Shown here: positions 1,311-32,022 of the stretch, piece after piece
Layout: the number at the start of each line of letters is the position of its first letter
How positions within the stretch are numbered: position 1 is the stretch's first letter
NCBI GenBank assembly: GCA_040285825.1
Contig: JAUPSS010000004.1
Coordinates: forward strand, 3,080,550-3,144,549
Direction of reading: 5' to 3'
Length of the DNA: 64,000 bases
Source: Eukaryota sp. TZLM1-RC
Lineage: Eukaryota > Protista > Metamonada: BaSk clade
Made by a program: the position numbers and the translations under genes
The notes under the pieces: model-generated
What the model was told of the DNA's origin: nothing
Seen by the model: only the letters and a program-made list of their open reading frames with translations
Database searches by the model: none

Positions 1311-2149
1311 AATGAAAATGTGATCACCATGTTTTATGATAGAAAGTCGATATGTGAGTTGAGCTCCCAAAAAGAAGGCATCTTGAGAACCATAACAAAT
1401 GTCAATAATTCAAATCGGCGTAGGGAGAAGATTTGTCATAACCATTCTCATGCCTGGTGATATTAAAGATTTTACAGATGAAGAAACAGTCCATAACAAT
1501 TTCTTAATCCACAATCTGCCGTGAATCAATTGGGAGTGAATGAAGCACATGGCTGTAAATAGTCAGTATGATTCAGATGAGATCCAATATGTAGGTATCA
1601 TCAAAAAAAATCGTGAACCACTGATACACTACCAGCAGCAGTTACAAGACTTTCAGGAATTGGAGACGTATGGTGATGTAATTTGGCGCTATTTTTCAGA
1701 AGTTTACACAAGTGAATAAGAAGAGTGGGAGACTTTGGTAACAGTAACAGTTGAAAGGTAAATCGAGCTGATGCTGCTGAACACTAATAGAGATACATCG
1801 GATAGTCATTTGATATCTTTGTGAAAATTTGCAACCATTTTGAAATTACAATTTGCAATCAGCATGTCAGACATTTCTCAGCGAGATTCTCCCGACACTT
1901 CACATTCTTTTAACATCACGCAGCAAAAGGAGAAAAAGGATAACGATGTAACGGACTCAATTGTGACCTCCTCTTTCAACTTCTTCTTCACAGAACTGCA
2001 GAGTACTTCCTCCCGATCTCCTCAGTCCGGAACAGTAATCCTGCTTTACAAGAATAAACGGAAAGTCAGAGTCTCGATTTTCTATCGGAATCGTCGTTCT
2101 GTTTTTTCTGTGGGTGTAGAGTATTACACTTTTTTCAGTCATCTTGTGA

Positions 2150-2560
2150 GTCATGATATGTGTGCTATTGAATTAGCCGTGCTGATATTCACCTTGGATA
2201 TGGGATGTTCTTGATTGTGTTTTGTTTTGAATTGTTATTTTGATGTTTTTGATTTTGTTGATTTCTTTGTTTTAGGTACTTGCACTTTGAATATGAGATG
2301 TTTTTCTTGTTTATGTATTTTTTTTTGAATTTTTATCTTGCTGTAATTGAGTTTGTTGTTTTTTGTGATTTAGCTACTTGTACTGTAGATATGGAATGTT
2401 GTTTTTGTTTGTGTTTTGTTTTATATTGTTGTTATTTTGATGTTTTTGATTTTGTGGATTTTTTTGGTTTAGATACTTGTACTTTAGATAAAGGATGTTG
2501 TGTCTTAAATTGTTATTTTGATAATATTGAGTTTGATGATTATGTTAATAATTTATGTTT
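2150..2560. repeat. Imperfect tandem repeat, about 4 units of roughly 90-100 bp, T/G-rich
   Basis: Recurrent ttgttattttgat...gattttgt.gattt..tacttg.act.t.gata.gg.atgt blocks. The minus strand reads as K/Q/S-rich low-complexity peptide with stops. Confidence 0.6.
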
Positions 2561-2767
2561 TGAATCCTGTAGCTGTCAACATTTTCTATCAACAAACCCA
2601 TTTACTGTTGATTAACAACGAGATTTTGAAACAAATCCTGGTCCCAGAAAAAGAAGATCCATTTGTAAATCAACTATTTCATCAAAAATTATTACCAACA
2701 AACATCAAAGTGTAAGCGGAAAGAACAACAAAATGTACTAAAGAAACAAATTTGTGTTGAAAATACA

Positions 2768-5700
2768 ATGTTGAAAATCGAGAACAGAAAAATTTTGACA
2801 AAAGAACCATTGAAATTGAGTATGGTCAAAAAAATTAAGCCAAGTCTCAGTGGCTTCAAGCCTGATCCTTTGATTCAATTCAAATCAACGACAACAAATC
2901 AAAATCTTCTTGTGGTTATGTGCATTGATCTTGAAACATATCAGGATGGTTATCTTAACCAAAATCATGATGACCATTTTCTCCCTCCTGGTGAAGTTGT
3001 CAACAAAAAGAGAAAAGAGGGTGCAAAACTTTCGAAAAAGAAAACTGATGAGCAAATGGATGAGTGGATTTCCAATCAAAAAGTGTTTTTAATTTCGATT
3101 GTTATTGGCAGATTTGACCAACACAATTTCTTTTTAAAAAGCAAATATTCGTTATTATTGAAGATGAGTTCCCAAATTAGATCTTTACCTGAAATTAATA
3201 TGAATGTTCATGCAGAATTATTCTTCAACGAGGAAACTTTGCTTCGTAGATTTTCAAACCTTATTGACAATTGTCAACCACATTGTTTATTGAATCACAA
3301 TTTAATCAAATTTGATTTACAAGTATTGAAAAATCGAGTCAATGAATTTAATTTATCATTTCACACTGTTGCAAATGATCCAATGCACTCAATCAACTTT
3401 CACCAAAATGGAGAAAAATTGTCATCAGGGAAAATGGCTTTAATCTTTTAGATACTCCGGTTTTTGCCAAGAAATTTTATAAAAATCCTCTACGGACATG
3501 GATTAGGTAATCTGGCATATAAAAAGGTTAAGAAAAGAAAACCAAAATTCATCAGGAATTTTCCCATATTTTGCCAATTGATTTCTTTAGCTAATCCTCC
3601 TTTGATACAAAATTCTATTCAATATGGACTTCATGATTGTGTCCTCTGCCTGAAACTTTCCTGCTGTTTTAGGAAGACAAATTCATTTTATCATCTTATA
3701 AAACCATTCATGCAACCGTCAACTCAATGGTTAAACATTCAAATGTGATACTCAAATTGAGAAAAACTGCTGTAAAATTTCAACAGTTGCGAATTCATAC
3801 TAAATGTTGCCTGAAGGTGTATTGACAGTCCACATTTGAAGGTAATTTACTATTACCTCAAACATTTGCCAAATTATACGAATCATTAATGGCCAGAATT
3901 CGTTATATTTCAGCTGAGTATTATGGGCAAGAAATGGTGAAACCAAAAAGTGCATTTCCACAGGACTTTGAAGACTTTGTTTATGGTGAAGGAGTTTATA
4001 CTTTAAGAACTACCTTTGAGCAACATAAGTTAAACAAAACATTGAGTTATCTTGATCATTTGAGACAGAAGCCTGAACAGTTTCCACGATTTCCAACTGA
4101 TGGTTTCAGTATACCACCTGAGTAAATGGCCCCAGTATTGTTTGAAAATAATTTGAAATTAAATTATGAAAAACATATTAATCGATTTATCAATGTTTAT
4201 TTTGACAAAACAGATGTGGAAAATATGTTAGCAGAAATGCACAAACCGGGTAAATACTCAACGCCATTATCTACAATTATTTCACTATATAGATTCAGGC
4301 TTCGTCAGTACAAAAACTTGTGTTTAGTTGAAGATAGAAATTGTTCTTTGTTTCATCATCCAGAAAATATTTCAGACCTTCTTAATGATGAATTTTTCTA
4401 TTTATGTGAACAACATGATATAAGAAATAATGAACTTATAGACATCTTTGAGGGTCTTATTGAGCCATTCACTTGTCAAATTGAGAATTTGGTCACTGAC
4501 GAGAATTTAGTTGATAACATATTTCCAGTGGATATACATTTTCTTGCAGACGCTGTTGAAAAAGATCATCAAGTATTCCTAAAACCAGCAATTACAATTG
4601 CCCAATATATTTCCAGTAGGGAGAAAACCTTATCAAATTTCTCCTGTTTCAACCACGGTAGGTCCTGGATATTTTCCTATTGATACAAGAACAATATGGA
4701 CAATTGTTAAACAAACAATAATTGATGATTTATCATCAACACAGATGCTGAAAATGTACAATACACAGGCCCAAATTACGAAATTCAAACCACCTGAGCA
4801 ATTTGACTTTTGGTCTAATATTCTAGATTTAAACCAACCAATGTTCAAACAGAAGAGCTATAAATTCAACAACATTATCCACACAAATGGATTTAATATT
4901 GCAGTAGAATTTGTTCGTCAGGATTTATGAGGTCAGAAATGTAAGCCAAACAACAAGGCCAGTGTTTCTGATTTATATATTAATGACGTTGATTTTGATG
5001 CTTTTCAAGACAAACGAATTGTTGTTTGTGATCCTGGAAAACGTGATTTATTGTATTTTGGGAGTAAAAAAACGGATCAAGAATTAGCATGGTTCCTGAA
5101 CATTAAACTGAACAGCAAAGTAATAGTTGGGTGATGAATCAAGACAAGAAATTCAAATGGTTGAGAATGACTCAGATGTCTTGGTCTTTGAAAAGTAGGA
5201 TGAATGAAAAACAAAAACGATGGGTGATAAAGTATACTGAGGTAGATTACGACAGGAACCAAATGATAAAATGTAACGAAATGACAATTGAAGATGCAAA
5301 CACCGAATTGTCCGTTTTTGCTGCCAATTCAGCAACTTTTATAGATTTTTCCAACTTTGTCGTTGTCAAACTTCAGCAAGCTTATTTGAAAATTGACTTT
5401 TACAGTCTTGACTTGTGGAGCATTCATAAGATGCAAGCTTTTATTCACAAGCAAAAGACTGAAAGTTGGTTGTTAAAAAAACTTGTTCAGCAGTTTGGCA
5501 ATCCAAAAGACACTTTAATACTAATGGGTCATTATGGTAAAAAAAGTTCCAAGAATTTGAAACAACAGAGACCTACTCCAGGCAGTGGATGGACTCAATT
5601 TCTGAAAATGAATGGATTTGAAGTATTGATGATTAATGAAGCTTTCAATTCGGCAAAATGTCCTGTTTGCTTTGAAAAGGTTGCTACGTCTTTTGAGATT

Positions 5701-5917
5701 AACAGATCCCAGATTCTATAGAAGAGAAAAGACTCCTGTTACTACATGTCATGGTTGATTAGCTTGTAACAGTGACAGATGCAAACTCAGTAAGAAAGGC
5801 TCAACAAAGCTTTTCAATAGAAATAAGCTGGCTTGTCTGAATATGTTTGCAATTGCTGAAACCAGAATGAGTGGCAACGAAAGGCCTCAGTACCTGTGTA
5901 GTAGATTGTTTTGGTAA
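2768..5917 (+). pseudogene. Fanzor1 (TnpB-like RuvC) with N-terminal PolB-type DEDDy 3'-5' exonuclease domain, copy 1 (frameshifts and stops)
   Basis: ExoI DLET 2927-2938, ExoII HNLIKFD 3296-3316, ExoIII YGLHD 3623-3637. Fanzor N-term YKTIHATVNSMVKH from 3697; FNNIIHTNG; RuvC-I VCDPGKRDLLY (DPG 5030-5038); QFGNPKDTLILMG; RuvC-II INE (5638-5640); CPVC...CHG*LACNSDRC zinc finger; RuvC-III FNRNKLACLN (5816-5824); RPQYL C-terminus. Confidence 0.85.
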
Positions 5918-5990
5918 TTGTTCTACCCATGTGTGTGGGGAATTCCATTTTCAAACTCTCAACTCCCCCAATCTATATTGTCTTCATTAA

Positions 5991-7022
5991 ATGTTGACCA
6001 TAACTCAACTGGATGCGCTCTATGACTGGCAGCATCAGTCTTTTTCTTCCTCCGAAAGCTCTCTCCTCGAGTCGTTACATCATTTACATTCTTTTATAAC
6101 TCATGAGTCTTTGTTTTCAAGCAATGAGGAGCTAGACGACGTCAGTACCTCCTCTCTCCCTTATTTGCTTGTTCCTTTCTTCCTTGGTATAGCTACCTCC
6201 AACTCATCATCCTTATCCCGCCTACAAGCCATTTCACACGGCAAGTCTTACCTCAACACCTTCACTACTCTTGCCTATAACTACAATATCCTCTCTGAAT
6301 CTCTCATCTCATCATTTTCTTTGCTCTCCGATGACCTGAAACCAAAAGAGGTAGACGCTTATGAGAAGAGGAAGTTTCTGGTGCTGAGGCAGAAGAGAAT
6401 TAAGGAACTGCTTTCCCTTATTGAGCCAATTAATGTAAATACATCTGATGAAGAAAACATTCGCCAGCATTACATCATTAAAATAGAATTAGCAGTTGTA
6501 GTTACGTTCAAAACCTTGGAATTTTTGGTTCAGGAAGAAAATATGCTAAAAGAAGTCGAAAAAATGAAAAGTGAAGGTCGAGATGTGGTTTCGGAATATC
6601 AATCAGAAAAGGCCAAAATGTTTAGAAAACCTTTGACCAAATTGACAAGAGAAGACTTGCAAAAGAAATCTTTAGATTTAGGTCAAAATAGTAGGTCAAA
6701 TCTCCCTCTTAGTCACGTCATGGGTCAAGGCAGGTCAAGGCAGGAGGTCAATAATCAAGTTTTTGATGTCAGTCACCGGTTATTTACTATTAGTTCAGAA
6801 GAAGCAGATCAAATGGAAGCTGAAAGAATATTTAATAGAATGGAAAAAGAAGAAAAAGAGAAAATTCAACAAGAAATTCATCAGCGGCAACTACAGAATC
6901 AATCATTTTACATCGATTCGACTATTGATTCGACTGATTTTCAAACTTACAAAGATCGTTATTGGGATGATTGGAAGGATGCAAATCCCAAAGGGACCGG
7001 TAACAGTTTGAGGGGGAAATAA
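5991..7022 (+). CDS. TAP42: TAP42/IGBP1 (alpha4) PP2A-associated protein
   Basis: LFSSNEELDDVSTSSLPYLLVPF N-terminal motif and C-terminal WDDWKDANPKGTGN. Confidence 0.9.
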   Translation: MLTITQLDALYDWQHQSFSSSESSLLESLHHLHSFITHESLFSSNEELDDVSTSSLPYLLVPFFLGIATSNSSSLSRLQAISHGKSYLNTFTTLAYNYNILSESLISSFSLLSDDLKPKEVDAYEKRKFLVLRQKRIKELLSLIEPINVNTSDEENIRQHYIIKIELAVVVTFKTLEFLVQEENMLKEVEKMKSEGRDVVSEYQSEKAKMFRKPLTKLTREDLQKKSLDLGQNSRSNLPLSHVMGQGRSRQEVNNQVFDVSHRLFTISSEEADQMEAERIFNRMEKEEKEKIQQEIHQRQLQNQSFYIDSTIDSTDFQTYKDRYWDDWKDANPKGTGNSLRGK

Positions 7023-7976: not shown

Positions 7977-10709
7977 TCATGTTTTGAACTTATTTTGAAG
8001 CCAAATTGGTTCACTTTGATTTATTTCTTCTTCAATTGAGTTGATGAAATTTTGACGAATTTGAGCCATTTTAAACAAAGTAGTCACTTCATTGAGAACA
8101 ATATCATGAAAAACTATTCTATTTAAATCCATATACTTTGCTGAACTTTCCCTATGTTTAACCAATGATTCGTGATATGAAAGTTGTAAGGAACGTACAC
8201 TACCTAAGATTCCTCGAAGACAACTAACATTTTGGTGGGTGTCAAAAAAGGTCAAATTATCAACATGATTAATAGACTGGCAAAGACTTTTTAAATGATT
8301 TCGTTCACTACTATTGCCGTACTCAGTATTATCCAAAATTTGCTTCACCATTGGTTTTGTTAGTAAAATTATTTTGTAAAGAGGGAAAGTTAATCGATCT
8401 GATTGCGACAAGCTGTCAATTTTCGAAAAGAGATCAATAGAGATCAATCCAGAATTGACAACAGCTGCTGCGAATGGTGAAAATTTCAATTCATTTTCTT
8501 GGGAAATATCATTTGGAGTTGGACTAAACAAGATTGACTTCCTGAACAAGGACAGCACATCAGAAATGGTCAAAAATTTGAATTGAGTAGTGATAAACTT
8601 CATAAAATTTATTAAAGGTACCTTTTTGCTTTTTTGTTCCAAAAAGAGCTCGAATAAAGATTTTCTCAAGTTTTTAATGAATTTTCTTTGATATGAATTA
8701 ATATAAAAATTCAGCAATGATTCTATAAGAACAAAAAATGGATAGTTGTTGTTGGAAATCAACCTTGAATCAAATAAGTCATCTGTATGTAACCCAAAAT
8801 CTGACAAACAATGAATGATATTGGAATTTAATACGAAATTAATGTCTACTATTGGAGGTAAGGAGTCATTTGATAGAGAATCAATGGAAAAAGATTGTAA
8901 ACATTTGAAAAAGAATAGTAAGACATCTGGGGAAAATTCTTCTGTCAAAAATTTCAGCAAAGTCGATAGTTCTGATCTTGTCGACTGTTGTTGGATTGAG
9001 TTGGAATCGAAATTTTTAAAATTTAAGGCTGTAACAATAGCTCGCTGACAGTCAAAGGAGTCAAAATGTAGGGCAAAAAGTTCAGAAATGCGAGGAAAAT
9101 TAAAGAAAGTTGAAGAATTTAAATCATTTTCAGTTAAATAGAAATCACTTCTTCCAACACCACTACCATAGGCTAAAGGTGAAAAATTCAAACAATAAAT
9201 ATTTTGCAAATTATTTAAAACTTTTCTGAAAGAAAGCTGAATATCAGACAATTTCCAATCACTTATTTGATTACTTCCCGAGCAAAGACAGCCAAAAGGT
9301 AAAAATAAGAAAAATCTAGAAAATTCAGTTAAAGAATTACCTTGGCCTAAATGATCTTTTACCTCAGGATCAATGGTGACAAGATCAAAATTTGATTTGT
9401 TTTGAGCTCTTTTCTCTTCTTGCTCTCTTATATATGCTTCAAGCTCATCAACTTTGTATGACAAATTTTTAGTTTTTGACTGTAACATGTCAATCATCCG
9501 ACTGTCAGCAAGACTTTGCTTGACTAGTTTCCGATTTTCTTCAAAAACATCATTGATATTCTTGACCTTATTGGACCCTTCGGACGACATACTCTTTTTT
9601 ACCATATCTTCAAGCCTTCTCATTCGTCCTACTAATTCTCCCAAGTCTTTCCAATTCCAACTGACTTCCTTTGACCCAACCCCCACATCAAATCCAAGAA
9701 GTTTCAAGGAAGTTTCTAATTCTAGAGACTTGGTTGCCAAATCATTGATACCAGGATTTAGTTTATGATTATACTCAGCACATTCAGGGCAAATTTTGGT
9801 CAATTCAATCAAATTTTGGTCGTTTTCATTTTCAGAAGGTATTTCGTTGCTTGAAATGGATGGAGTTAAAGTTTTAACTGAATAGCTGTTTCTTAATCTT
9901 TTAGGTTCATTTGAACTTTTTTTAAATTTGGAAATCTCTTCTGAAAGCTCAACTATTTTGTTTTTATACAAATCTAACTGAATTAATTCACCAGAAACAG
10001 AATTCTTATAATTTAAATGTTCTGATTTCAGAGACTTAAATAATTGATGCAACGATAAAATAGTGGCATGTAATTCATTTCTTTTGGCTTTTTCAGAACT
10101 TAATTGTTTTTTTAATTCAGATTCTCTATTGCTAAAATCTTTAATTATTGAATTTTGAGAATTTTTATTTCTCGTCGATAGAGTTGCAATTTCTTGTTTT
10201 AAAACATGAATTTCCTTCTTATATTCCCCCTCCATATTAGAATAAGCCTCCTTAAATTGAATTCTCTCTTGTTTTCGCAGACCCTTCTCCTTCTCCAATG
10301 ACTGATGGATCTTATTCAGCACAGTGACTGAAAGTTTCCCCACAGCGCTAGCCTCGGAGCACCAAGATGTGAGAATGGACGAGAAGGAAGAAAAAACAGA
10401 CGATAGGCGAGAGATCCAACGCATAGAAGAGTCAAGATTGACAAAAGAGATTGAGGTTTGTGAACGATTGTGGTGGGAGGAAGAGGGCCTGGCATCAATT
10501 TCTAAAAGAATTTCCTTGATTTGGGAGGTTAGCAAGTGGATGTCCCCACGATGAAGAGACATTGAGGTATTTCTTGCATTAGGAGTGTCAGTGGGAATTC
10601 CTAACGAAGAATGAGATCTTTTGGGAGTAGTACGGAAAGAATTAGATAACGAAGATGCATTAGATGTGCTTACTGGCATATTATAAGAAGAAGATCCATA
10701 GCATTGCAT
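7977..10709 (-). CDS. Hypothetical 910-aa protein with N-terminal coiled coil
   Basis: Long intact ORF, head-to-head with ALG1. No family recognised. Confidence 0.75.
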   Translation of the reverse strand: MQCYGSSSYNMPVSTSNASSLSNSFRTTPKRSHSSLGIPTDTPNARNTSMSLHRGDIHLLTSQIKEILLEIDARPSSSHHNRSQTSISFVNLDSSMRWISRLSSVFSSFSSILTSWCSEASAVGKLSVTVLNKIHQSLEKEKGLRKQERIQFKEAYSNMEGEYKKEIHVLKQEIATLSTRNKNSQNSIIKDFSNRESELKKQLSSEKAKRNELHATILSLHQLFKSLKSEHLNYKNSVSGELIQLDLYKNKIVELSEEISKFKKSSNEPKRLRNSYSVKTLTPSISSNEIPSENENDQNLIELTKICPECAEYNHKLNPGINDLATKSLELETSLKLLGFDVGVGSKEVSWNWKDLGELVGRMRRLEDMVKKSMSSEGSNKVKNINDVFEENRKLVKQSLADSRMIDMLQSKTKNLSYKVDELEAYIREQEEKRAQNKSNFDLVTIDPEVKDHLGQGNSLTEFSRFFLFLPFGCLCSGSNQISDWKLSDIQLSFRKVLNNLQNIYCLNFSPLAYGSGVGRSDFYLTENDLNSSTFFNFPRISELFALHFDSFDCQRAIVTALNFKNFDSNSIQQQSTRSELSTLLKFLTEEFSPDVLLFFFKCLQSFSIDSLSNDSLPPIVDINFVLNSNIIHCLSDFGLHTDDLFDSRLISNNNYPFFVLIESLLNFYINSYQRKFIKNLRKSLFELFLEQKSKKVPLINFMKFITTQFKFLTISDVLSLFRKSILFSPTPNDISQENELKFSPFAAAVVNSGLISIDLFSKIDSLSQSDRLTFPLYKIILLTKPMVKQILDNTEYGNSSERNHLKSLCQSINHVDNLTFFDTHQNVSCLRGILGSVRSLQLSYHESLVKHRESSAKYMDLNRIVFHDIVLNEVTTLFKMAQIRQNFINSIEEEINQSEPIWLQNKFKT

Positions 10710-15642: not shown

Positions 15643-18600
15643 ATGGAAAACGATAGTCGGACCCAAAAAGAGGGAGTCAACATTAAAATCAACCCCTCCG
15701 TCAAAAATGGTAAGACAAGAACCTTCTACTCAGTCAGGAAAGCGCAGAAAAATTACCTCAAAGGCCACTAGAAAACCAAAACTATGCCTAAAAGGCACAT
15801 ATGGGTGATTCAACTTCTGTACAAATTAATACAGAACAAAATGAAATATTCAAGAAGTTCATTAAAAATTTACCATCAAATCTATCTGCGAGACAGAAAC
15901 GACGTAAACTTAATCTTCATGTGACTCAAAGGGACTTACAGTCAGCTGAGGAAATATTGCTAAAATATTCTAACGATGGTGTAATTTCTAATTCCTCATC
16001 GATACCTCGAGTTGATGTAAAGACCCCATAAATTGATCTTTTTTTAATTGATCTTTAGGCCAAAAATTTCAAGGCCAGTGGGAAAAACTAAAGAAAAACC
16101 AAAAAAGGAAAAACTGTCTATAAAAAACACATAATAAAAATGAACATTATTGCTCAACTAAAAGATACGACAATTACAAAATCAATTCATTTTAATTGAT
16201 ATTGAAACTAAAACAAACAATCAACTTTCCCCTAAAACATTACTCAAAAGCTGAATGAAATGAGGAAGACAGAGGCTGAAGACTTGAGAAATCTGACTGA
16301 TGAAGAAAAAGTACAGGGGGTCAATAACCAAGAAGTTTTCATAATTTCTCGTGTTTTTGGGTTCTTTAAAAAAGATGATTTTTATATACAAGAAAATTTT
16401 ATTGCTTCGTGTGCAATATAACCTGAAGGGACGTTGAAAATCCCCCATCATTGTAAAAAGATCCATTTTTTTGATACAGAAAATAATTTATTATCATTTT
16501 TCGTTCAATTTTTAATTGATCACAAAAAAAGATGTTTGGACGTGTTGATATATTCAAAAATTTGATGTTCCAAAATAATTCAACCGAAGATATTTTACCA
16601 TTTTTATCCTCTTTTGGCAGCAGATTTCCTGTAATTTTAATGGTTTTACCATCTGTGATTTATTCTTTATTTAAAAAAATTTATAGCATCAAAATCGAAT
16701 AAGTCCTTGCGGTCTCTGAGTTGGTTCTTATTAAATGAGTCTAAAAGGTATCTTCATGATACATTTGAAAACTTTTTACCAATTGATTGTGTCAGAAGAA
16801 GACCCCAAGATACAATTAATTTATTATTCAAAGATAGTGTTTTTGCCTTAAAACGATTTTTACCGTTTCAATGAAACAAAGTGCTTCAACCCATTTTTGT
16901 AACACACAAAACCACATTGAACTCTATTGTCAAGCATAGAGGATTGGAACTTTTGTTGAATTACTATGCTCAGTTGGTTCACAAATTGAAAATTTGCACG
17001 TCATATTGACTTAAATTATTTCTTTTAAATTTAACTGAAAATGACCAAGATTTTCCTGTTGCAACTCGAATAGTAGAACAAATTCAAATGTTGCTCAGTA
17101 AAATTTCTGCCACTGAACACAATATTGAATTCAATGAGGTTGTAGACCTACGCGAATTTATGAGGACTTGAAAAATTTTGTTGAAAATAGTTGTAAGCAG
17201 TTAATGGAAACAAATGGTGGTATTTCTTTTTTTCCCATTAATCATGGTGCTAGATTGAGGTCTTTTATCGCCAAATTATTAAAACGAATTTAGTTGTTAA
17301 TATTCAAATGACATATGCTCAATATATTGAAAAATTTGTGAATCTATATTTTGAGAAAATGAAAGTTGAAGAAGAGTTGATCCAAAACGAAAAATCTGTG
17401 TTTTGTTGGAGGTTACCTCAAGTCAACAATCTATTTCTGCAGAGGAATCGAAACAATTTTCCGACTACTGACGATCAAATTGATAATTTCATTAACTTTC
17501 TGATGATGAAATCTTATACGCAGACAATGAAAATTGTTTGAATCAATCAGCAAAATTTGTTCTTTTAGACAGTACTCATTTCAAAATTGGTAGGTTATTA
17601 AAGGATGAAAATTGGATGAATTTAATTTTCCCTGGGTCTATTTTAGTAAACAATTTAAGAAATGAAAAGAAGGCTAGTTAAGTTAAATCATTACTTTTCA
17701 CTGTGCGAAAACATTCCCAATCTTTTAGCAAATAAGCTATCAAAATTAATATTTGTACAGAAAAAGCTGAGAAAAAACACTGAAGGCCATTTCAATTGTT
17801 CGAAATGAAAATTCTGGATTTTTCAAAGTTGATAGCCAAAGATTCTGGGGTGTTTTGCGTCCTTTTTTACAGATGATGAAATTACAGCTAAAAATGCTAA
17901 TTGAAAGTGCAATTCAATGACTGACAGTCAACGTATGGATCCAGAACAACTGAATTTATTTTGGTCATATTTTTTTGAATTTAATAGACCATTTACTAAA
18001 AGAGGCTACAAATTTAACAACGGCATTAAAACTGATGGTTTTGCAACCTGTATTGAGCTTGCAATAGAGGATTGTATTGGTATGTCCCTCAAGCTTGATA
18101 GTGCAAAATTTGCAACCACTGAGAACTATTTGGATAATTTGGTTGTTGAAAATCTATCAACAAAATACAAAGTACATATTGACCCTGGTAAGTGATACAT
18201 TTTATTTTTGAAGTTACAAAAGATTCAAACTGAATGCAGAAAACCAATTAAACCGAGATAAACAATAGGAGTAGCTGAGATTAACAGAATTGGAATGGTC
18301 AAGGGTGACGAGAGTTCACCAAAAACTCAGAAAATTGAAAAACAATGAGTATATTTTACAGAATGGAATCACAGTGGAACAAACAGAAGCTACATTATCA
18401 AAAGAATCATCAAAATCTTCCATTTACAATAATTTCTATTCTTATGTTTCTTCCAAGCTTATAAACATGACATTCACATTAATGATATGACCCATTCAAA
18501 AAATACAAAGATATGTCCATCATCAGAAAACAGAGACTAAGTTATTGAAAAGAATGGCTGAAAAGCAATGGAAGCCAGAAGACACTGTCCTAATGTTTGG

Positions 18601-18779
18601 TGGCAATGGTAATAAGAGACAGAAATCAAAGCATCATCAATCAAGTAAAGGAGTTGGATGGAGAAATTTCTTTAAGAGAAATGGTTATACAGTATGTTTA
18701 GTTGATGAAAAAAAACGTCTTCAAAGTGTCCAACTTGTTATAACCCAGTTGATGTGTTTCTTGATGTTGAGAATCCTAG
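15643..18779 (+). pseudogene. Exonuclease-Fanzor1 fusion, copy 2 (divergent family), 5' part up to the Gypsy insertion; start approximate
   Basis: ExoI LIDIET (DIET 16198-16209); LTDEEKVQGVNNQEVFIISRVFG aligns with copy 1 KTDEQMDEWISNQKVFLISIVIG; FFDTENNLL; KFD 16558-16566; Fanzor N-term FVTHKTTLNSIVKH from 16896; FNNGIKTDG; HIDPGK (DPG 18181-18189); LVDE..TSSKCPTC..ENP. Confidence 0.82.
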
Positions 18780-18988: not shown

Positions 18989-21900
18989 TTAGCTCCTCTT
19001 CCTAATTCTATTACTGCGTCTAGGCTTCTTAGAAGGCGTAGACTCATTGGAGGTACTTTGTCGTCGACTAGTGGTACGTTTTCCAATTTTCTTGTTATCC
19101 TTACTAAATAACTTAGAAGCTTCTGAATGTTTAACCGAATGGAGTGGCTCTTCTGTTGTCTCACCGCCAAACCATTGAACAGTACAGAAACTACCTGAAT
19201 CAGAGTGGTATTCTGAGAGGATTTTCTCTATAACGTGTTTTTCGGAATCGCCTGCAGCGACTGCCTTGAGGAACTCAATGTCCTGTGGATTTTCTGCGTT
19301 ATAGGTTTTGCAATCTTTCTTGGCAGCTTTTAATTCTGTGCCAGTAGTAAGATTCTTCAATAATAAAGTGGATTTGGAAGGAAGGTCAATAACTAAAAAT
19401 GGTCCATTCCAAGATCCATGCAATTTATTATTTTGCTTGGTTTTACGTAAGACGTAGTCACCAATATTGAATGCTAAAAAACACGAATTAGTATTATCTA
19501 CTGAAGACGGAGTATTTAATGTTTGGTGACGCTCTGCTTTTTCCCTTTTTTCTTGTAGACGAGTGTTTTTCATTTTGATGTCATCTAATAAAGGGATATT
19601 AGTTTCAAATTTGGATAAATTTCCTAATATATTAGCAGGGGCTGTTCTTGGACTAATCGAAGAACCGAACATGAGTTCGTATGGGGTAAAACCAGTTTTT
19701 CTGCTTTTAGTAGAATTTATTAATAGTTGGGATATAGGTGCGTATGTAGACCAATTTCCGTAATCATTGAAATCTATTAATAGTTTCCTTAAGCATTGAA
19801 GAACGTCTCTATGTTTACGTTCTACAAGTCCATTACTTTCTGAATAGTGGGGAATTGAGTTACTCATCTCAATCGCTAATCTGTTACACACTATTTTGAA
19901 AGTCTCATTGGCGAACTCAGGTCCATTATCACTATGAATTAACATAGGTATGCCGAAGATAGCGCAAACATTCCAAATTAAAGCATCTGCGGTTTCTAAG
20001 GCATTGAGTTCTTTTAGAGGTACTAAGATTGTATATCCAGTAAAAGAGTCTACAAATACTAATAGATATTTATGTCCTTCGTTGTCAGAATTTAGGGGTC
20101 CAATTGTATCGACGTTTAATCTGGCAAAAGGACGATCTGCCCATAAAGATCCTGTGGAAGGTGTTTTTGATCTTTTAACTGGAGCCGTTTTTTGACAAGT
20201 TGGGCATCTTTTGACATGATCAATAAGGTCCTTTCTCATATTGGGCCAGTAAAAATCGCTTTTGGATAGTTTGTGTAAACTATCGTTTTTGCTAGGGTGA
20301 CCAGATTGAACCAAACCATGTATTAATAGAAGTGCCTGTTTTCTGAGGCTCTTTGGAATCAAAATTTTGTTTTTATTATTTTTCCAAATTTGAGTACTTT
20401 CATCTAGAATTGCATTTTCAAATAACGAGTCGTTGTTGTTTTTGGCTATTTGTTGTTCAGATCTTATCTTAGAGAACCAAGAAGAAAAAATAGGTAGGTC
20501 TTGGTGTCTACATAGAGATGAGATTGTTGGGATGTCTTCAAGATCCGAATCAGAATCATCGTCTAGTGGAGGTATCTCGTAATTTGAAAGTAAAGTATCT
20601 GGTATATTTATACTACAAATAGAAGGAGCTTCCTCGTTTTGATCCAAATCAATATTCCTCGATAACATATCTGCCCAATGGTTGTCTTCACCAGGTTCGT
20701 GGACTATGTCAAAGTCGAATTCAGATAGTATCGGCAGCCATCTCTTTACAATTCTATTTTTCTCTGGGGCTGTAGCCAGGAATGCAATGTTTTTATGATC
20801 TGTGAAAATTGTTAAATGTCTAGTTAACAAGTAGCTTTCTAAACAACTTTCAGTTAAAATCAAAAGTATTGCATATAATTCTTTTTGTAATGTGGACCAT
20901 TTTCTTTGTGTTTCTGTAAGTAATCTACTATAGAATGACAAAGGTTTTACTTTCCTTTTATTTAGCGGGGTTCCTGCAGGGGAGTAGGGTTCAATTTCTT
21001 GCCAAATAACACCTCCTACTGCTACATCTGAAGCGTCAGTACTTATCAATACTCGCTTGCCCGGAGCTGGTAATTCAAGGGGCATGTGGTTTACTATTAA
21101 GTCTTTTATTTGTTTTAAGTAATCGTCATGCTTGCTAGTCCATTTAATTATTCTGGGTTTTCCTTTAATTAGCTCGTTAATTGGAGCAATTAATTCAGAA
21201 ATACCTGGAAGCCAATCTCTAATATAATTGATGGATCCTACCAATGAGCGAACTTCTTTCACTGTTTTTGGTCTAGGGATTCTCATCAAGGCTTCGATTT
21301 TTTTCTTACTAATAAATCTAGTTTTATCCTGGAAGGTACTTCCTAAAATGTCGATAGGGTGTTTTGATGTTACGAATTTACATTTGCGTAAGCCTATATT
21401 TACACGTCTATTTATGGCGCATTGGAGGACTCTTTGTAATCTCTTATAAAATTCTTCGAATGTCGTTCCAACTATTATGATATCGTCAATGTATATAAAA
21501 ACGCCGTCTATTTGGAAAATTTCCATCATTACGTTTTGAAAAACTGCAGGGATGTTCTTTAATCCGAAGCAAGCTCTTTTAAACATGATTGACCTTCCAG
21601 GAATTGAGATTGATGTTTTCTCAATATCCTTATCAGCTACATTCATCTGCCAGAAAGCTTTTGGTAAATCAAGCGTGGCGATGTAATTGGCTCTACTCAA
21701 CAATTCTAAAATATCACTAATCCTAGGTAGATTAGGCTCTACTGAAATCGTATGGGCATTAACTCCATCTTTACCACTAAAGTCTCCAGTTAACCTGGGT
21801 TTCTTGCCGTCAGGATATATAACTAAGACAATAGGAGAGCTGAATTTATAATTAGATTCAACTGCGTAACCCATTTTGATCAGTTCATCAAATATTTTGT

Positions 21901-22279
21901 TTGCTATTTCCATTTTGCTGGGATTTAACCGTCTAGCAGGCTTGTGTACTATAGCATTCTCATCTCTAAAGGGAATTGTTAGAGGATTACAATCGATCCC
22001 TTTTCTATTAGGAGTTTCACTAAAAACATCGCTGAATAATTTTAGTAGACTCGTTAATTTTAATTTATTATTACTATCATCTAAATTTATACCACATCCA
22101 GATCTTGCTAATTGCTCCTCAAAATCAGAAGGACTTGGTGATTGGTTATCTAAGTTCCCAATCGAATGTTGAGCGATCCTAGAGTCGAATTTTGATTCTG
22201 CATTTAGCAAAGTGCGGTGTTCTTTGTCTAATCTAATGAAAAGACCATCATCCGTCTGAAGCCCAAGTGCTTTTAACAT
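18989..22279 (-). CDS. Gypsy pol: RT, RNase H, integrase, chromodomain-like tail
   Basis: LDLPKAFWQ, FGLKNIP, YIDD, TDASD, ELYAI, TDHKN, H..GH..C..C, DTIG..HSDNG..E, GSWNGPF, VIEKIL..VQWFG..TEEP. Confidence 0.93.
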   Translation of the reverse strand: MLKALGLQTDDGLFIRLDKEHRTLLNAESKFDSRIAQHSIGNLDNQSPSPSDFEEQLARSGCGINLDDSNNKLKLTSLLKLFSDVFSETPNRKGIDCNPLTIPFRDENAIVHKPARRLNPSKMEIANKIFDELIKMGYAVESNYKFSSPIVLVIYPDGKKPRLTGDFSGKDGVNAHTISVEPNLPRISDILELLSRANYIATLDLPKAFWQMNVADKDIEKTSISIPGRSIMFKRACFGLKNIPAVFQNVMMEIFQIDGVFIYIDDIIIVGTTFEEFYKRLQRVLQCAINRRVNIGLRKCKFVTSKHPIDILGSTFQDKTRFISKKKIEALMRIPRPKTVKEVRSLVGSINYIRDWLPGISELIAPINELIKGKPRIIKWTSKHDDYLKQIKDLIVNHMPLELPAPGKRVLISTDASDVAVGGVIWQEIEPYSPAGTPLNKRKVKPLSFYSRLLTETQRKWSTLQKELYAILLILTESCLESYLLTRHLTIFTDHKNIAFLATAPEKNRIVKRWLPILSEFDFDIVHEPGEDNHWADMLSRNIDLDQNEEAPSICSINIPDTLLSNYEIPPLDDDSDSDLEDIPTISSLCRHQDLPIFSSWFSKIRSEQQIAKNNNDSLFENAILDESTQIWKNNKNKILIPKSLRKQALLLIHGLVQSGHPSKNDSLHKLSKSDFYWPNMRKDLIDHVKRCPTCQKTAPVKRSKTPSTGSLWADRPFARLNVDTIGPLNSDNEGHKYLLVFVDSFTGYTILVPLKELNALETADALIWNVCAIFGIPMLIHSDNGPEFANETFKIVCNRLAIEMSNSIPHYSESNGLVERKHRDVLQCLRKLLIDFNDYGNWSTYAPISQLLINSTKSRKTGFTPYELMFGSSISPRTAPANILGNLSKFETNIPLLDDIKMKNTRLQEKREKAERHQTLNTPSSVDNTNSCFLAFNIGDYVLRKTKQNNKLHGSWNGPFLVIDLPSKSTLLLKNLTTGTELKAAKKDCKTYNAENPQDIEFLKAVAAGDSEKHVIEKILSEYHSDSGSFCTVQWFGGETTEEPLHSVKHSEASKLFSKDNKKIGKRTTSRRQSTSNESTPSKKPRRSNRIRKRS

Positions 22280-22294
22280 GTCTGTCCCTATTAA

Positions 22295-25204
22295 TTATTT
22301 GTTCGAACCCGGGATTATGGGAAGAGTATGTTTATAATGAACTTGTTGCGCAATGCTTCCTACGTTGAACGACAGAATACCAGTTGCACTCCCTAGCGAT
22401 TTTGTGGATACGTTATTAGCTGGTAAGAACTTAATGGTATCCTTGCTATTGATTGACATATGGCATTGTTCAGCTAAATCTGCAGTAATAACTGAACAAA
22501 ACGCAGCCGAATCTATAGTCGCAATCATTTTAATATCATTTATTGATATCTCCAGTCTTAGAAATGGAGAACGCTGGGACCTGATGTGGTTTTCACTAAC
22601 CGTAGAATTAATATCAAAAATACTATTGATATCAGAGCTGGATTGGTGAATTTGTAGAGGAATTAAAAAATTTTGTTGAGCTGTTGGAAAGTTGTTGACT
22701 GGGTTTCCTAAATCGGTTGTTGATTGATTGTCATTGATTGCGTTGATGTGTACCCGATTAGGTAAGTTGCCTGTCCTGCTGTTCCGGTTGCTGTTGTTGA
22801 TCCGTCTGTGAGGAACCGTACTCGAACGGGTCGGTTTTGACTCAGTAGGGGATGCGTTTGATGATATATCCTCTGTAGTGTTGATGTTATACATAGGTCT
22901 GTACTGACCTCTTCCTTTATGACCTTTAAAACGGCCTCCACGGCCTCTAAATTTGAATCTATGTACACATCTACCACAGCCACCTCGGCCCCTTTCTACA
23001 CTGCCTCTACTAGCAGGCGCCTCCTGTTCTTCTAATCTGAATCTTTCTTCTTTGGGAACTCTGCTTCTAGCACAACGAGGATCTTTGCATTCGAATACAG
23101 TGTGGCCAACAGGATTGTTACCTTCGACGTTGCTGCAGAATGTACAGAATTTTGACCCTTCTCGTTCATGCTTTTCAGGGATGTATTTGTGTTGAGGGGT
23201 TCCTCTTGACTTTCCACCTGATCGTCTTGCTCGTTTTGATGGAGCCTGGGCTGATGGTGTTGCTCCTCTTGAGTAAGTTCTCATCGCCGTGAGTCCCAAA
23301 GGAATATCTTCTTCGTTAGCCCTGTTCCTTAGTACATCCATTGTGGGCTTGTTTCCTGCTGTGTAACACCAAGCGAGGAAATGTCTTCTCGTTGTCGATA
23401 TCAAATCGAGTAGAGTTGTTCTGTTCGGTGAGTCCCACAAGGATTCCCTAGTCCATACTGGGAGGAGTTCGCTCGATATAGCAAAGTTGTCCAAACCCAT
23501 AAGAAAGTACTCGGCTATTAGAGCGGGAGATATGGTTATCAGCCCACTGCTTCCTCTAATTAAATCGGGGATGGTTAGGTCGGTCATGTAGGTGGTCATT
23601 CTCAAGACGTCTCCAAAATCTTCTACATAACGACCAAACTCGTTGTCAGCCTCATGCCTATTGTGGATTTTTCTCCAGTTGATTCTAGGCTTCATTAGAG
23701 CTGTACAAGCCTCATGATATGATGTGAATTGTGTTCTTTTTAACAGAAATACCATGACGTCGGCGTCGGTATAGTCAACACCGAGTAAACCTTGACTCTG
23801 CCATCTGGATAGAAGGCTAGGGTCAATCTTGCTGGATATTCCTGTAGGGCAAGTGCTCATCATCATGCTCCTAAATAAATCATAATGGTGGATTGGGGGT
23901 CCGAGCTTATCTGTTATAGCTGGGTCAATCCTTACCAAAGGCTGTGTTGTATCCCTGGTGATCTCGTCGCGTATGTGTTTGGGGAGATCTTTAATCCTAT
24001 CTTGGGTTATTTCTGCTTGGCCTTCTCCAAATAACTGGGTAGCTATCATAAAGGCTCTGGTCCAATCTGATTGACCTGGGGCTTCAAAGCTTCTATTAGC
24101 TATCTTTCGCCCGTATTTATCCCAAGTTTGATATTTTAAAAGAAAAGCTATGATAGACATTTTGTTGATAGGGTCGTCAGCGGATAATCGAGGTCTTTTA
24201 TAGTCGATATCCTTAGACCGTGGATCAATCTGTCTATGAAGGCTACTAGCTATGCTCATGTCAATAGCTCTTCTTGAGGATTGTAGGTCCTCAATACGCA
24301 TAGATCTGTCGGAAGAAGAGTTTCTTACTGAGGGTTGAGGAGGAGCCGTTTCTCCAACGACTGGCCCGTTCAACTCTATGTCTTCTCCGATTTCACATTC
24401 TATAGGTTGAGAGGAAGTTGGTTCTTCCTGAGGAGCAACGTCTTGTCTAGTTACAGGTTCCGGGACGTTCACTGTTGGAACGTGTTCGGGTATGCTGTCA
24501 ATAGAGCAGACCTGTATTGGTTGGCTTTTTTCAGAAATAATGGGGGCTACAACAGGCAGTTTGGGAAGGTGGAGAGATGTGGATGGATCTCCCGTTACCC
24601 ATTGTCTAAACTCTCGTTGTTTCGTGAACAAGTTACCATGTTGTTGGATGTAGTTGTTAGGACGGCTCCTATACGTGGATACAGCTGATCGTTCCGTATG
24701 AATGTTATTTAAAGCGTCTGCATCAAACCAGGGTGTTACTGGTTCAAGCTTGTCTTGTTCACTACTATCCTCCTGCTCCATAAATTCCCTAAAATATGTG
24801 GGAGCACCCTCTGTCAGCTCCGTGTAATTATGGATTTCCGTATCAAAGTTAGGGTCAAACCAGGCAGGCAATTTGGATTGTAGGATGTCTTCTGAGTCGG
24901 TCCTACTTCTCTGCTCGATGGAGAGAAACCTTATTCTCCTGCCGTGTTGATCTAGGAAGAAGGCCTTCCAATCCAATCTATCTTTGATGGGAAGAGACAT
25001 CATTTCATTGATTCTCTTGTCCATTCCAGAGATTCTGGGGCGGCGCTCTGCGTTACGCCCGAATGTCTCTCTACTCAGTTTATCAAGTGCCTTTATAAGT
25101 TCATTCCTTTCATTGAGGGGATTTCCAATACCTTTTGGGTATCCCCAATCATTCCGAGGGTCTGGAAACCAACGTTTCTGCCTCTTTTTTGAATGTGACT
25201 CCAT
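22295..25204 (-). CDS. Gypsy gag-protease (zinc knuckle, aspartic protease IDSAA)
   Basis: CTFC..GHTVFEC knuckle, RGG tract, MIATIDSAA. In frame with pol through a single TAA at 22295-22297 (NK*LIGTDM). Confidence 0.85.
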   Translation of the reverse strand: MESHSKKRQKRWFPDPRNDWGYPKGIGNPLNERNELIKALDKLSRETFGRNAERRPRISGMDKRINEMMSLPIKDRLDWKAFFLDQHGRRIRFLSIEQRSRTDSEDILQSKLPAWFDPNFDTEIHNYTELTEGAPTYFREFMEQEDSSEQDKLEPVTPWFDADALNNIHTERSAVSTYRSRPNNYIQQHGNLFTKQREFRQWVTGDPSTSLHLPKLPVVAPIISEKSQPIQVCSIDSIPEHVPTVNVPEPVTRQDVAPQEEPTSSQPIECEIGEDIELNGPVVGETAPPQPSVRNSSSDRSMRIEDLQSSRRAIDMSIASSLHRQIDPRSKDIDYKRPRLSADDPINKMSIIAFLLKYQTWDKYGRKIANRSFEAPGQSDWTRAFMIATQLFGEGQAEITQDRIKDLPKHIRDEITRDTTQPLVRIDPAITDKLGPPIHHYDLFRSMMMSTCPTGISSKIDPSLLSRWQSQGLLGVDYTDADVMVFLLKRTQFTSYHEACTALMKPRINWRKIHNRHEADNEFGRYVEDFGDVLRMTTYMTDLTIPDLIRGSSGLITISPALIAEYFLMGLDNFAISSELLPVWTRESLWDSPNRTTLLDLISTTRRHFLAWCYTAGNKPTMDVLRNRANEEDIPLGLTAMRTYSRGATPSAQAPSKRARRSGGKSRGTPQHKYIPEKHEREGSKFCTFCSNVEGNNPVGHTVFECKDPRCARSRVPKEERFRLEEQEAPASRGSVERGRGGCGRCVHRFKFRGRGGRFKGHKGRGQYRPMYNINTTEDISSNASPTESKPTRSSTVPHRRINNSNRNSRTGNLPNRVHINAINDNQSTTDLGNPVNNFPTAQQNFLIPLQIHQSSSDINSIFDINSTVSENHIRSQRSPFLRLEISINDIKMIATIDSAAFCSVITADLAEQCHMSINSKDTIKFLPANNVSTKSLGSATGILSFNVGSIAQQVHYKHTLPIIPGSNK

Positions 25205-25953: not shown

Positions 25954-26152
25954 CTAGGCCATGGAGAAATGCCCAACTGTGAAATGCCATGCTTATTTCA
26001 GATGTCGATCTGATGTGTGTAGAGAAGATTGTGATGGAAAGGATAAGATATATATATGGAATCGTAACAAGTTAGCATGTATCAACATCAATGCAATTGT
26101 AGATTATTTTGTAGAGGATAGTATTGGTGATAGGCCTCCATATTTGTCTTAA
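25954..26152 (+). pseudogene. Exonuclease-Fanzor1 copy 2, 3' part (second half of zinc finger plus RuvC-III)
   Basis: Removing the Gypsy restores ENPRPWR, then KCHAYFRCRSDVC...IWNRNKLACININ...RPPYLS*. NRN at 26060-26068. Confidence 0.85.
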
Positions 26153-31263: not shown

Positions 31264-31374
31264 TGGCTTCAACAACGCTGTTCAGATATGAAGAAAAGTA
31301 ACTGGTTGAGATACTATACTAGTTTTTACGGCCTGTGGGAAATTCCCATTAGAACACGATCAATTTTCGTGTGG

Positions 31375-32022
31375 AATAATTACAAAAACTATCTACTAGA
31401 TAGGTACTGAGGCCTTTCATTACCACTCATTCTAGCTTCAGCAATTGTAAACATATTCAGACAAGCCAGCTTATTTCTATTGAAAAGCTTTGTTGAGCCT
31501 TTGTTAGTACAAATTTGTTACGAACAAATTCTATTGCAATATTGTATCAATCTGTGTGGATAATGTTGTTGAATTTATAGCTCTTCTGTTTGAGCATTGG
31601 TTTGTTTTAAATCTAGAGTATTAGACCAAAAGTCAAATTGCTGAGGTGGTTTGAATTTCGTAATTTGGGCTAATGCATTGGACATTTTCAGCGTCTGTGT
31701 AGATGATAAATCATCAGTTATTGTTTGTTTAACAATTGTCCATATTGTTCTTGTATCAATGGGAAAATATTCAGGGCCTACAGTGGTTGAAACAGGAGAA
31801 ATATGATAAGGTTTTTCTCTCTACTGGAGATATATTGGACAATTGTAATTGCTGGTTTTAGGAATATTTAAGGATCTGTTTCCACAGCGTCTGCAAGAAA
31901 ATGTATATTCACTGGAAATATGTTATCAACTAAATTCTCGTCATTGACCAAATTCTCAATTTGACAAGTAAATGGCTCAATAAGACCTTCAAATATGTCT
32001 CTAAGTTCATTATTTCTTATAT
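31375..32022 (-). pseudogene. Fanzor1 copy 3: internally deleted derivative of the copy-1 family
   Basis: 31519..32022 matches about 4418..4920 and 31375..31510 matches about 5790..5925. RuvC-I, RuvC-II and the zinc finger are deleted. KLFNRNKLACLNM retained (NRN 31473-31481). Confidence 0.88.

Follow-up and report, generated by a model that had tools for sequence, protein, structure and literature searches.

An asparagine at the third RuvC catalytic position of exonuclease-fused Fanzor1 proteins in the metamonad Skoliomonas

Introduction

Does an Asn at the third catalytic position of the RuvC nuclease silence a Fanzor1 (Fz1) protein, or can it be part of a working active site? The third Asp is essential in most RuvC nucleases, Cas12 and TnpB included, and nuclease-dead, host-domesticated derivatives of TnpB, the TldR proteins, act as RNA-guided transcription factors. 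The question is raised by a 64,000-nucleotide stretch of DNA (hereafter, the window) from contig JAUPSS010000004.1 of assembly GCA_040285825.1, which holds three Fanzor copies, each with N-R-N at the RuvC-III motif. The proteins of this assembly are named "Eukaryota sp. TZLM1-RC", which is the type strain of Skoliomonas litria, a free-living metamonad (PMC11603281). A literature search turned up no publication describing Skoliomonas Fanzors or a natural fusion of an exonuclease to a Fanzor.

Three decayed exonuclease-Fanzor1 copies

Copy 1 (positions 2768–5910, plus strand) is an Exo-Fanzor1 pseudogene in which a PolB-type exonuclease domain is followed by Fanzor1, as delineated by tblastn with an intact Exo-Fanzor relative, P0006 (KAL0221781.1, Skoliomonas sp. 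TZLM3-RCL), by Pfam and by the match to SpuFz1 of Spizellomyces punctatus. Residues 321–1281 of P0006 cover positions 2915–5899, and this alignment passes through four frame switches (2>1>2>1>2) and no fewer than 11 in-frame stops. The Pfam domain DNA_pol_B_exo1 is recognizable at 2768–3448 (2e-9), and the piece at 5131–5718 matches SpuFz1 (8gkh_P, 3e-7). The TNB zinc finger (KCPVC ... CNSDRC, 5656–5782, plus strand) is broken by a frameshift near 5702–5721 and by an in-frame TGA at 5756–5758. Copy 2, which shares 31%–45% amino acid identity with copy 1 and represents a divergent subfamily, is also an Exo-Fanzor1 pseudogene on the plus strand, in which tblastn revealed many stops and frame switches. 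Its 5′ part (16239–18777) comprises the exonuclease (16239–17129) and the 5′ piece of the Fanzor (17272–18777), whereas the 3′ part, holding the RuvC-III N-R-N, lies at 25958–26149. Inserted between them on the minus strand are the open reading frames (ORFs) of a Ty3/Gypsy LTR retrotransposon (18989–25204; Pfam RVT_1, RT_RNaseH, Integrase_H2C2, and rve on 18992–22279), which separates the two zinc-finger halves, with the flanking Fanzor pieces at 18715–18777 and 25958–26149. Copy 3 (31371–32022, minus strand) is a fragment of the copy-1 subfamily with an internal deletion: in blastn, it matches positions 4418–4918 and 5791–5926 of copy 1 at 91%–92% DNA identity, and the stretch between them is absent. 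Thus, all three copies are pseudogenes, copy 1 by its stops and frame switches, copy 2 by decay and splitting, and copy 3 by its fragmentary state, and no working protein is expressed from any of them. A PolB-type exonuclease region lies upstream of the Fanzor part in both copy 1 and copy 2.

The initial annotation had reported N-R-N in all three copies and the retention of the RuvC-I Asp and RuvC-II Glu in copies 1 and 2, and both readings held throughout. In copy 1, FNRNKLAC is encoded at 5813–5836, with N-R-N (AAT AGA AAT) at 5816–5824 and the codon of the catalytic position at 5822–5824; in copy 2, WNRNKLAC occupies 26057–26080, with N-R-N (AAT CGT AAC) at 26060–26068 and the catalytic-position codon at 26066–26068; and in copy 3, on the minus strand, FNRNKLAC maps to 31461–31484 and N-R-N to 31473–31481. 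The RuvC-I Asp of copy 1 (codon 5030–5032) is found within VCDPGK (5024–5041) and that of copy 2 within HIDPGK (18175–18192), and the rearranged RuvC-II Glu is found within MINEAF in copy 1 (codon 5638–5640 in 5629–5646; extended context MINEAFNSAKC, of the "DE..TS..C" type) and within CLVDEK in copy 2 (18695–18712). Because copies 1 and 3 are 91%–92% identical in DNA, their shared Asn amounts to one observation rather than two.

Several further features of the window are recorded here for completeness. Between 5910 and 5993, the Fanzor tail of copy 1 stops approximately 80 bp short of the start codon (ATG at 5991) of a TAP42-like host gene, which is intact and co-oriented with it (Pfam, 8e-48). 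Diverged direct repeats (81%–83% identity, offset by approximately 190 bp) occupy 2197–2541, immediately 5′ of the exonuclease ORF of copy 1; when translated, they resemble low-complexity Cys/Phe/Leu-rich sequence. Two long ORFs on the minus strand have no Pfam match: one of 910 amino acids at 7977–10709 and one of 969 amino acids at 22295–25204; the latter, which immediately precedes the Gypsy pol ORF, may encode its gag-like protein.

The Asn occupies the position of the third catalytic Asp

The Skoliomonas proteins display three hallmarks of Fanzor1: sequence and fold similarity to characterized Fz1, a split RuvC that keeps the DPG Asp of RuvC-I and the Glu of the rearranged RuvC-II, and a CxxC...CxxC zinc finger (TNB) located between RuvC-II and RuvC-III. 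The 47-residue tail of copy 1, a short query, yielded no match in a phmmer search against PDB, and the register of the motif was determined through P0006. In phmmer with the C-terminal half of P0006, its "wnrNklaclnf" pairs with "wnrDmlstcnm" of SpuFz1 (8gkh_P; E = 4e-23), in which the aligned Asp is chain residue 1000, that is, native D606 given the MBP offset of 394 residues, and with "wnrDqaavlnf" of PpFz1 from Parasitella parasitica (E = 6e-26). The "INE" of copy 1 pairs with E541 of SpuFz1, the catalytic residues of which are D383, E541, and D606 (PMC11423790, PMC10432273). In these alignments, the second Asn of N-R-N unambiguously corresponds to the catalytic D606.

An AlphaFold2 (AF2) model of the RuvC half of P0006 (residues 913–1281), built from an alignment of 89 Fz1 sequences, reached a pLDDT of 88.5 and a pTM of 0.83; when the 11-sequence family alignment was used instead, pLDDT was 48 and the model was unusable. 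In the former model, D98 ends a beta strand, E283 directly follows strand 277–282, the last strand of the core, and N344 is placed in the first turn of helix 343–359; in the numbering of full-length P0006, these residues are Asp1010, Glu1195, and Asn1256. As modeled, this placement of D98, E283, and N344 matches the canonical RuvC layout (PMC11423790). The best Foldseek matches of the model are PpFz1 and SpuFz1 (E approximately 1e-19, TMq 0.62–0.65), followed by Fz1 of Guillardia theta (GtFz1; E = 2e-8, TMq 0.48).

Conservation and selection in the family

The distribution of the Asn was assessed by a phmmer scan of 1.84 billion representatives with the copy-1 piece 5131–5718 as the query, which gave 346 matches; the census described below is based on these representatives and the members of their clusters. 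Among the scan matches, the closest family is confined to two genomes, those of TZLM1-RC and Skoliomonas sp. TZLM3-RCL, where it is multi-copy, with near-identical copies on different contigs alongside many decayed ones. The PolB-type exonuclease is N-terminal to Fanzor in every long family member, and the exonuclease motifs DxE, NxxFD, and YCxxD are conserved in the long NRN members. N-R-N is present in 30 of the 31 family proteins from the two genomes that cover the RuvC-III region. The sole exception, P0155 (KAL0208358.1, encoded by S. litria TZLM1-RC outside the window), reads KYWNRDKMACLN. This 143-amino acid fragment is 94% identical to P0008, from which it differs by nine substitutions, one of them replacing a zinc-finger Cys with Tyr. 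P0155 is a decayed copy rather than an intact NRD member of the family, and its Asp is apparently the result of a chance mutation of the Asn in a dead gene; the census thus contains NRD only in this fragment and in no intact member.

Alignment of eleven members representing at least four subfamilies (33%–56% identical) revealed the invariance of the RuvC-II Glu (E523), the four zinc-finger Cys (C530, C533, C565, C570), and the W-N-R-N-x-x-A-C motif (W575, N576, R577, N578, A581, C582), with the RuvC-I Asp (column D341) being nearly invariant. Conservation extends to the C-terminal end ("...ERP.YL"), which is present in full and not truncated. Across the subfamilies, the codons vary synonymously, the Asn at the catalytic position being encoded by AAT or AAC and the adjoining Arg by CGA, AGG, CGT, or AGA. 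One locus (L001), which encodes P0006, contains at 1438–5373 an uninterrupted ORF of 1312 codons with the ExoI motif DLET, RuvC-I DPGK, RuvC-II LLNEHNTS, and RuvC-III WNRNKLAC, and its comparison with a 95%-identical copy (L002) yielded dN/dS values of 0.28 over the Fanzor portion and 0.47 over the exonuclease. Such values below 1 indicate that the protein is under selection, although the function being selected need not be nuclease chemistry. Collectively, the invariance of the Asn across subfamilies and two genomes, its synonymous codons, the intact 1312-codon ORF, and the dN/dS of 0.28 bear out the earlier proposal that the Asn is ancestral and selected rather than a product of random decay.

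Within S. litria, no fully uninterrupted copy of the family was found. At the locus of the longest S. litria member, P0159 (locus L003), the coding sequence is distributed over two overlapping frames, 1372–3204 and 3176–5224, such that the annotated 1233-amino acid protein requires a frameshift or a short modeled intron at the exonuclease-Fanzor junction (3176–3204). Another phmmer representative, P0005 (351 amino acids), is 72% identical to the RuvC-II region of copy 1 over its first 92 residues, the remaining approximately 260 residues being unrelated, and may be a gene model joining a Fanzor remnant to an adjoining host gene.

Origin of the Asn

Approximately 100 more distant Fz1 representatives, which serve as the outgroup, read NRD, including P0095 (WNRD) as well as P0030, P0053, and P0058. 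In the FastTree phylogeny of 95 RuvC halves, the NRN proteins of Skoliomonas are monophyletic (SH-like support of 99), and on this basis the Asn has a single origin in the clade, at its root. GtFz1, the third catalytic residue of which is also Asn, is only distantly related to the Skoliomonas family, and the Asn of the latter is thus probably of independent origin. A further Fanzor1 with Asn at this position (WNRNRNGALNI) is P0074, encoded on a 1784-bp metagenome contig from ENA; it falls outside the Skoliomonas clade in the tree, is nearer to SpuFz1 than to GtFz1, and lacks the exonuclease. P0074 therefore appears to represent another independent natural lineage with the Asp-to-Asn change. 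Asn at the third RuvC position has already been published for Fanzor1, and what is new here is a further, apparently independent, natural lineage. With the Skoliomonas clade, GtFz1, and the metagenomic P0074, at least three natural Asn lineages can be counted, which lends support to the proposal of Xu et al. that the Asn is a possible advantage in Fanzors (PMC11423790).

Catalytic state of the RuvC domain

The published chemistry of Fanzor1 bears directly on whether the Asn is compatible with cleavage. In GtFz1, the third catalytic residue is natively Asn (N658, in NRN) and DNA is still cleaved (Xu et al. 2024 Cell, PMC11423790), with cuts mapped to both strands (Saito et al. 2023, PMC10432273). 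Cleavage by GtFz1 strictly requires Mg2+, whereas SpuFz1 accepts several cations; the SpuFz1 D606N mutant exceeds the wild type in activity, and, conversely, GtFz1 N658D has lowered activity (PMC11423790). The corresponding Asp-to-Asn changes in Cas12 and TnpB bring no increase in activity (PMC11423790), so that tolerance of the Asn depends on context. The premise that the Fanzor triad must end in Asp, from which the initial annotation started, is outdated for Fz1. Its suggestion of a RuvC that has died, been attenuated, or turned into a nickase while the chemistry moved to the fused exonuclease is unlikely, given that the Asn is competent in both GtFz1 (N658) and SpuFz1 D606N and that GtFz1 cuts both strands. 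Hence, a Fanzor1 with Asn at the third RuvC position should not be taken for a dead nuclease on that account.

How far these properties extend to Skoliomonas depends on the relationship to each enzyme. Similar to the Skoliomonas family, GtFz1 (PDB 9CER/9CES/9CET) has the Fz1 fold and Asn as the third residue of N-R-N, and it keeps both the Asp of RuvC-I (in DPGK) and the Glu of the rearranged RuvC-II. By contrast, it lacks the exonuclease domain carried by the Skoliomonas family, and its motif ("wwNRNvaGAfNIL" in 9cer_P) keeps "GAxNI" where the Skoliomonas proteins have "KLAC[LI]N". GtFz1 is a distant relative (phmmer E = 9e-4; Foldseek E = 2e-8, TMq 0.48), and its properties are transferred by analogy, whereas the D606N result comes from a closer relative. 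Indeed, SpuFz1 (PDB 8GKH) and PpFz1 (PDB 9CF0) are the closest solved relatives of the Skoliomonas family, with which they have the domain order and the zinc finger in common. Natural SpuFz1 and PpFz1 differ from the Skoliomonas proteins in having Asp (NRD) and in lacking the N-terminal PolB-type exonuclease, but the engineered D606N reproduces the Skoliomonas state, and SpuFz1 shares with the Skoliomonas proteins the Leu two residues past the catalytic position.

At the level of sequence, the Skoliomonas family thus corresponds to the published D-E-N triad of Fanzor1, and, by analogy with the two enzymes, we infer that its intact members are catalytically active. The explanation that we consider probable is that the three loci in the window are dead copies of a Skoliomonas-specific transposon gene in which a PolB-type 3′–5′ exonuclease is fused to a Fanzor1 RNA-guided nuclease. 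Across the clade, the third RuvC catalytic position is Asn instead of Asp through a single basal change, and purifying selection has maintained this Asn alongside the Asp of RuvC-I, the Glu of the rearranged RuvC-II, and the zinc finger. The intact members most likely use a noncanonical D-E-N triad, binding Mg2+ and cleaving both DNA strands, as do GtFz1 with its N658 and, for the triad, SpuFz1 D606N. The family accordingly offers natural, exonuclease-fused candidate D-E-N enzymes for biochemistry and genome editing.

Alternative explanations

Among the alternatives, the one that fares best is that the Asn modulates the RuvC, neither leaving its cleavage unchanged nor abolishing it, imposing strict Mg2+ dependence, slower or strand-biased (nickase-like) cleavage, or altered product release, with the fused 3′–5′ exonuclease processing the product. 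The specific need of the native-Asn GtFz1 for Mg2+, compared with the several cations taken by SpuFz1, is consistent with such modulation, as is the presence of an exonuclease with intact DxE, NxxFD, and YCxxD motifs in every long NRN member of the family. However, GtFz1 cuts both strands, SpuFz1 D606N outperforms the wild type, NRN occurs without the exonuclease in GtFz1 and P0074, and the co-occurrence of the two traits in Skoliomonas represents one clade with one event per trait, and we regard modulation as rather unlikely.

It is very unlikely that the RuvC is catalytically dead throughout the clade and that the proteins are TldR-like RNA-guided DNA binders, with any DNA chemistry being performed by the exonuclease. 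The requirement for the third Asp in the majority of RuvC nucleases, Cas12 and TnpB among them, argues for this possibility. So does the lack of an activity increase upon the Asp-to-Asn change in Cas12 and TnpB (PMC11423790), but two Fanzor1 enzymes are active with Asn at this position. The Skoliomonas family does resemble TldR in that a protein of the TnpB superfamily carries a noncanonical residue in the RuvC active site. Unlike in TldR, the departure consists of one conservative Asp-to-Asn change, conservation extends over the rest of the site and the C-terminus, and the gene belongs to a multi-copy mobile element; neither broad loss of catalytic residues or C-terminal truncation nor a domesticated, low-copy, non-mobile gene was found. 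The TldR analogy drawn in the initial annotation fails on the same points, namely, the invariant Glu and four zinc-finger Cys, the nearly invariant Asp, the untruncated C-terminus, and the near-identical intact copies of a transposon family rather than a domesticated single-copy regulator. Nor could the exonuclease substitute for the RuvC: a DEDDy 3′–5′ exonuclease cannot make an internal DNA break. The dead-binder explanation was accordingly rejected on the retained site, the full C-terminus, the multi-copy mobility, and the active Asn-carrying Fanzor1 enzymes.

Finally, neutral pseudogene decay or an alignment-register artefact, which the decayed state of all three window copies might suggest, is extremely improbable and was ruled out by the family census and alignments, considering that the Asn is found in 30 proteins of two genomes, with an intact ORF among them and with synonymously varying codons, that the lone Asp sits in the decayed P0155, and that invariant residues on either side of the Asn (W-N-R and A-C), as well as the SpuFz1 and PpFz1 alignments, anchor the register.

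The exonuclease fusion

The co-occurrence of NRN with the exonuclease, which the initial annotation had proposed to check, is complete in the family, but a single monophyletic clade accounts for the fixation of both traits, which constitutes a single evolutionary observation. Furthermore, GtFz1 and P0074 carry NRN without the exonuclease, and hence the two traits are not generally linked. Because the DEDDy exonuclease is unable to cut internally, it is more plausibly responsible for downstream processing of DNA ends than a replacement of the RuvC. We consider it quite unlikely that the Asp-to-Asn change and the gain of the exonuclease are functionally coupled, such that the Asn would change how the RuvC cuts DNA or handles its product, for instance through strand bias, metal use, or retention of ends, leaving the exonuclease to process the ends. 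If such coupling were true, the Skoliomonas proteins would be natural "cut-and-resect" RNA-guided enzymes with a chemistry unlike that of other Fanzors.

Two proteins show additional features. P0179 contains an additional Peptidase_C48 domain, and P0165 of TZLM3-RCL carries, at residues 159–166 upstream of the exonuclease domain, "EANPGPSD", which is similar to the 2A StopGo sequence.
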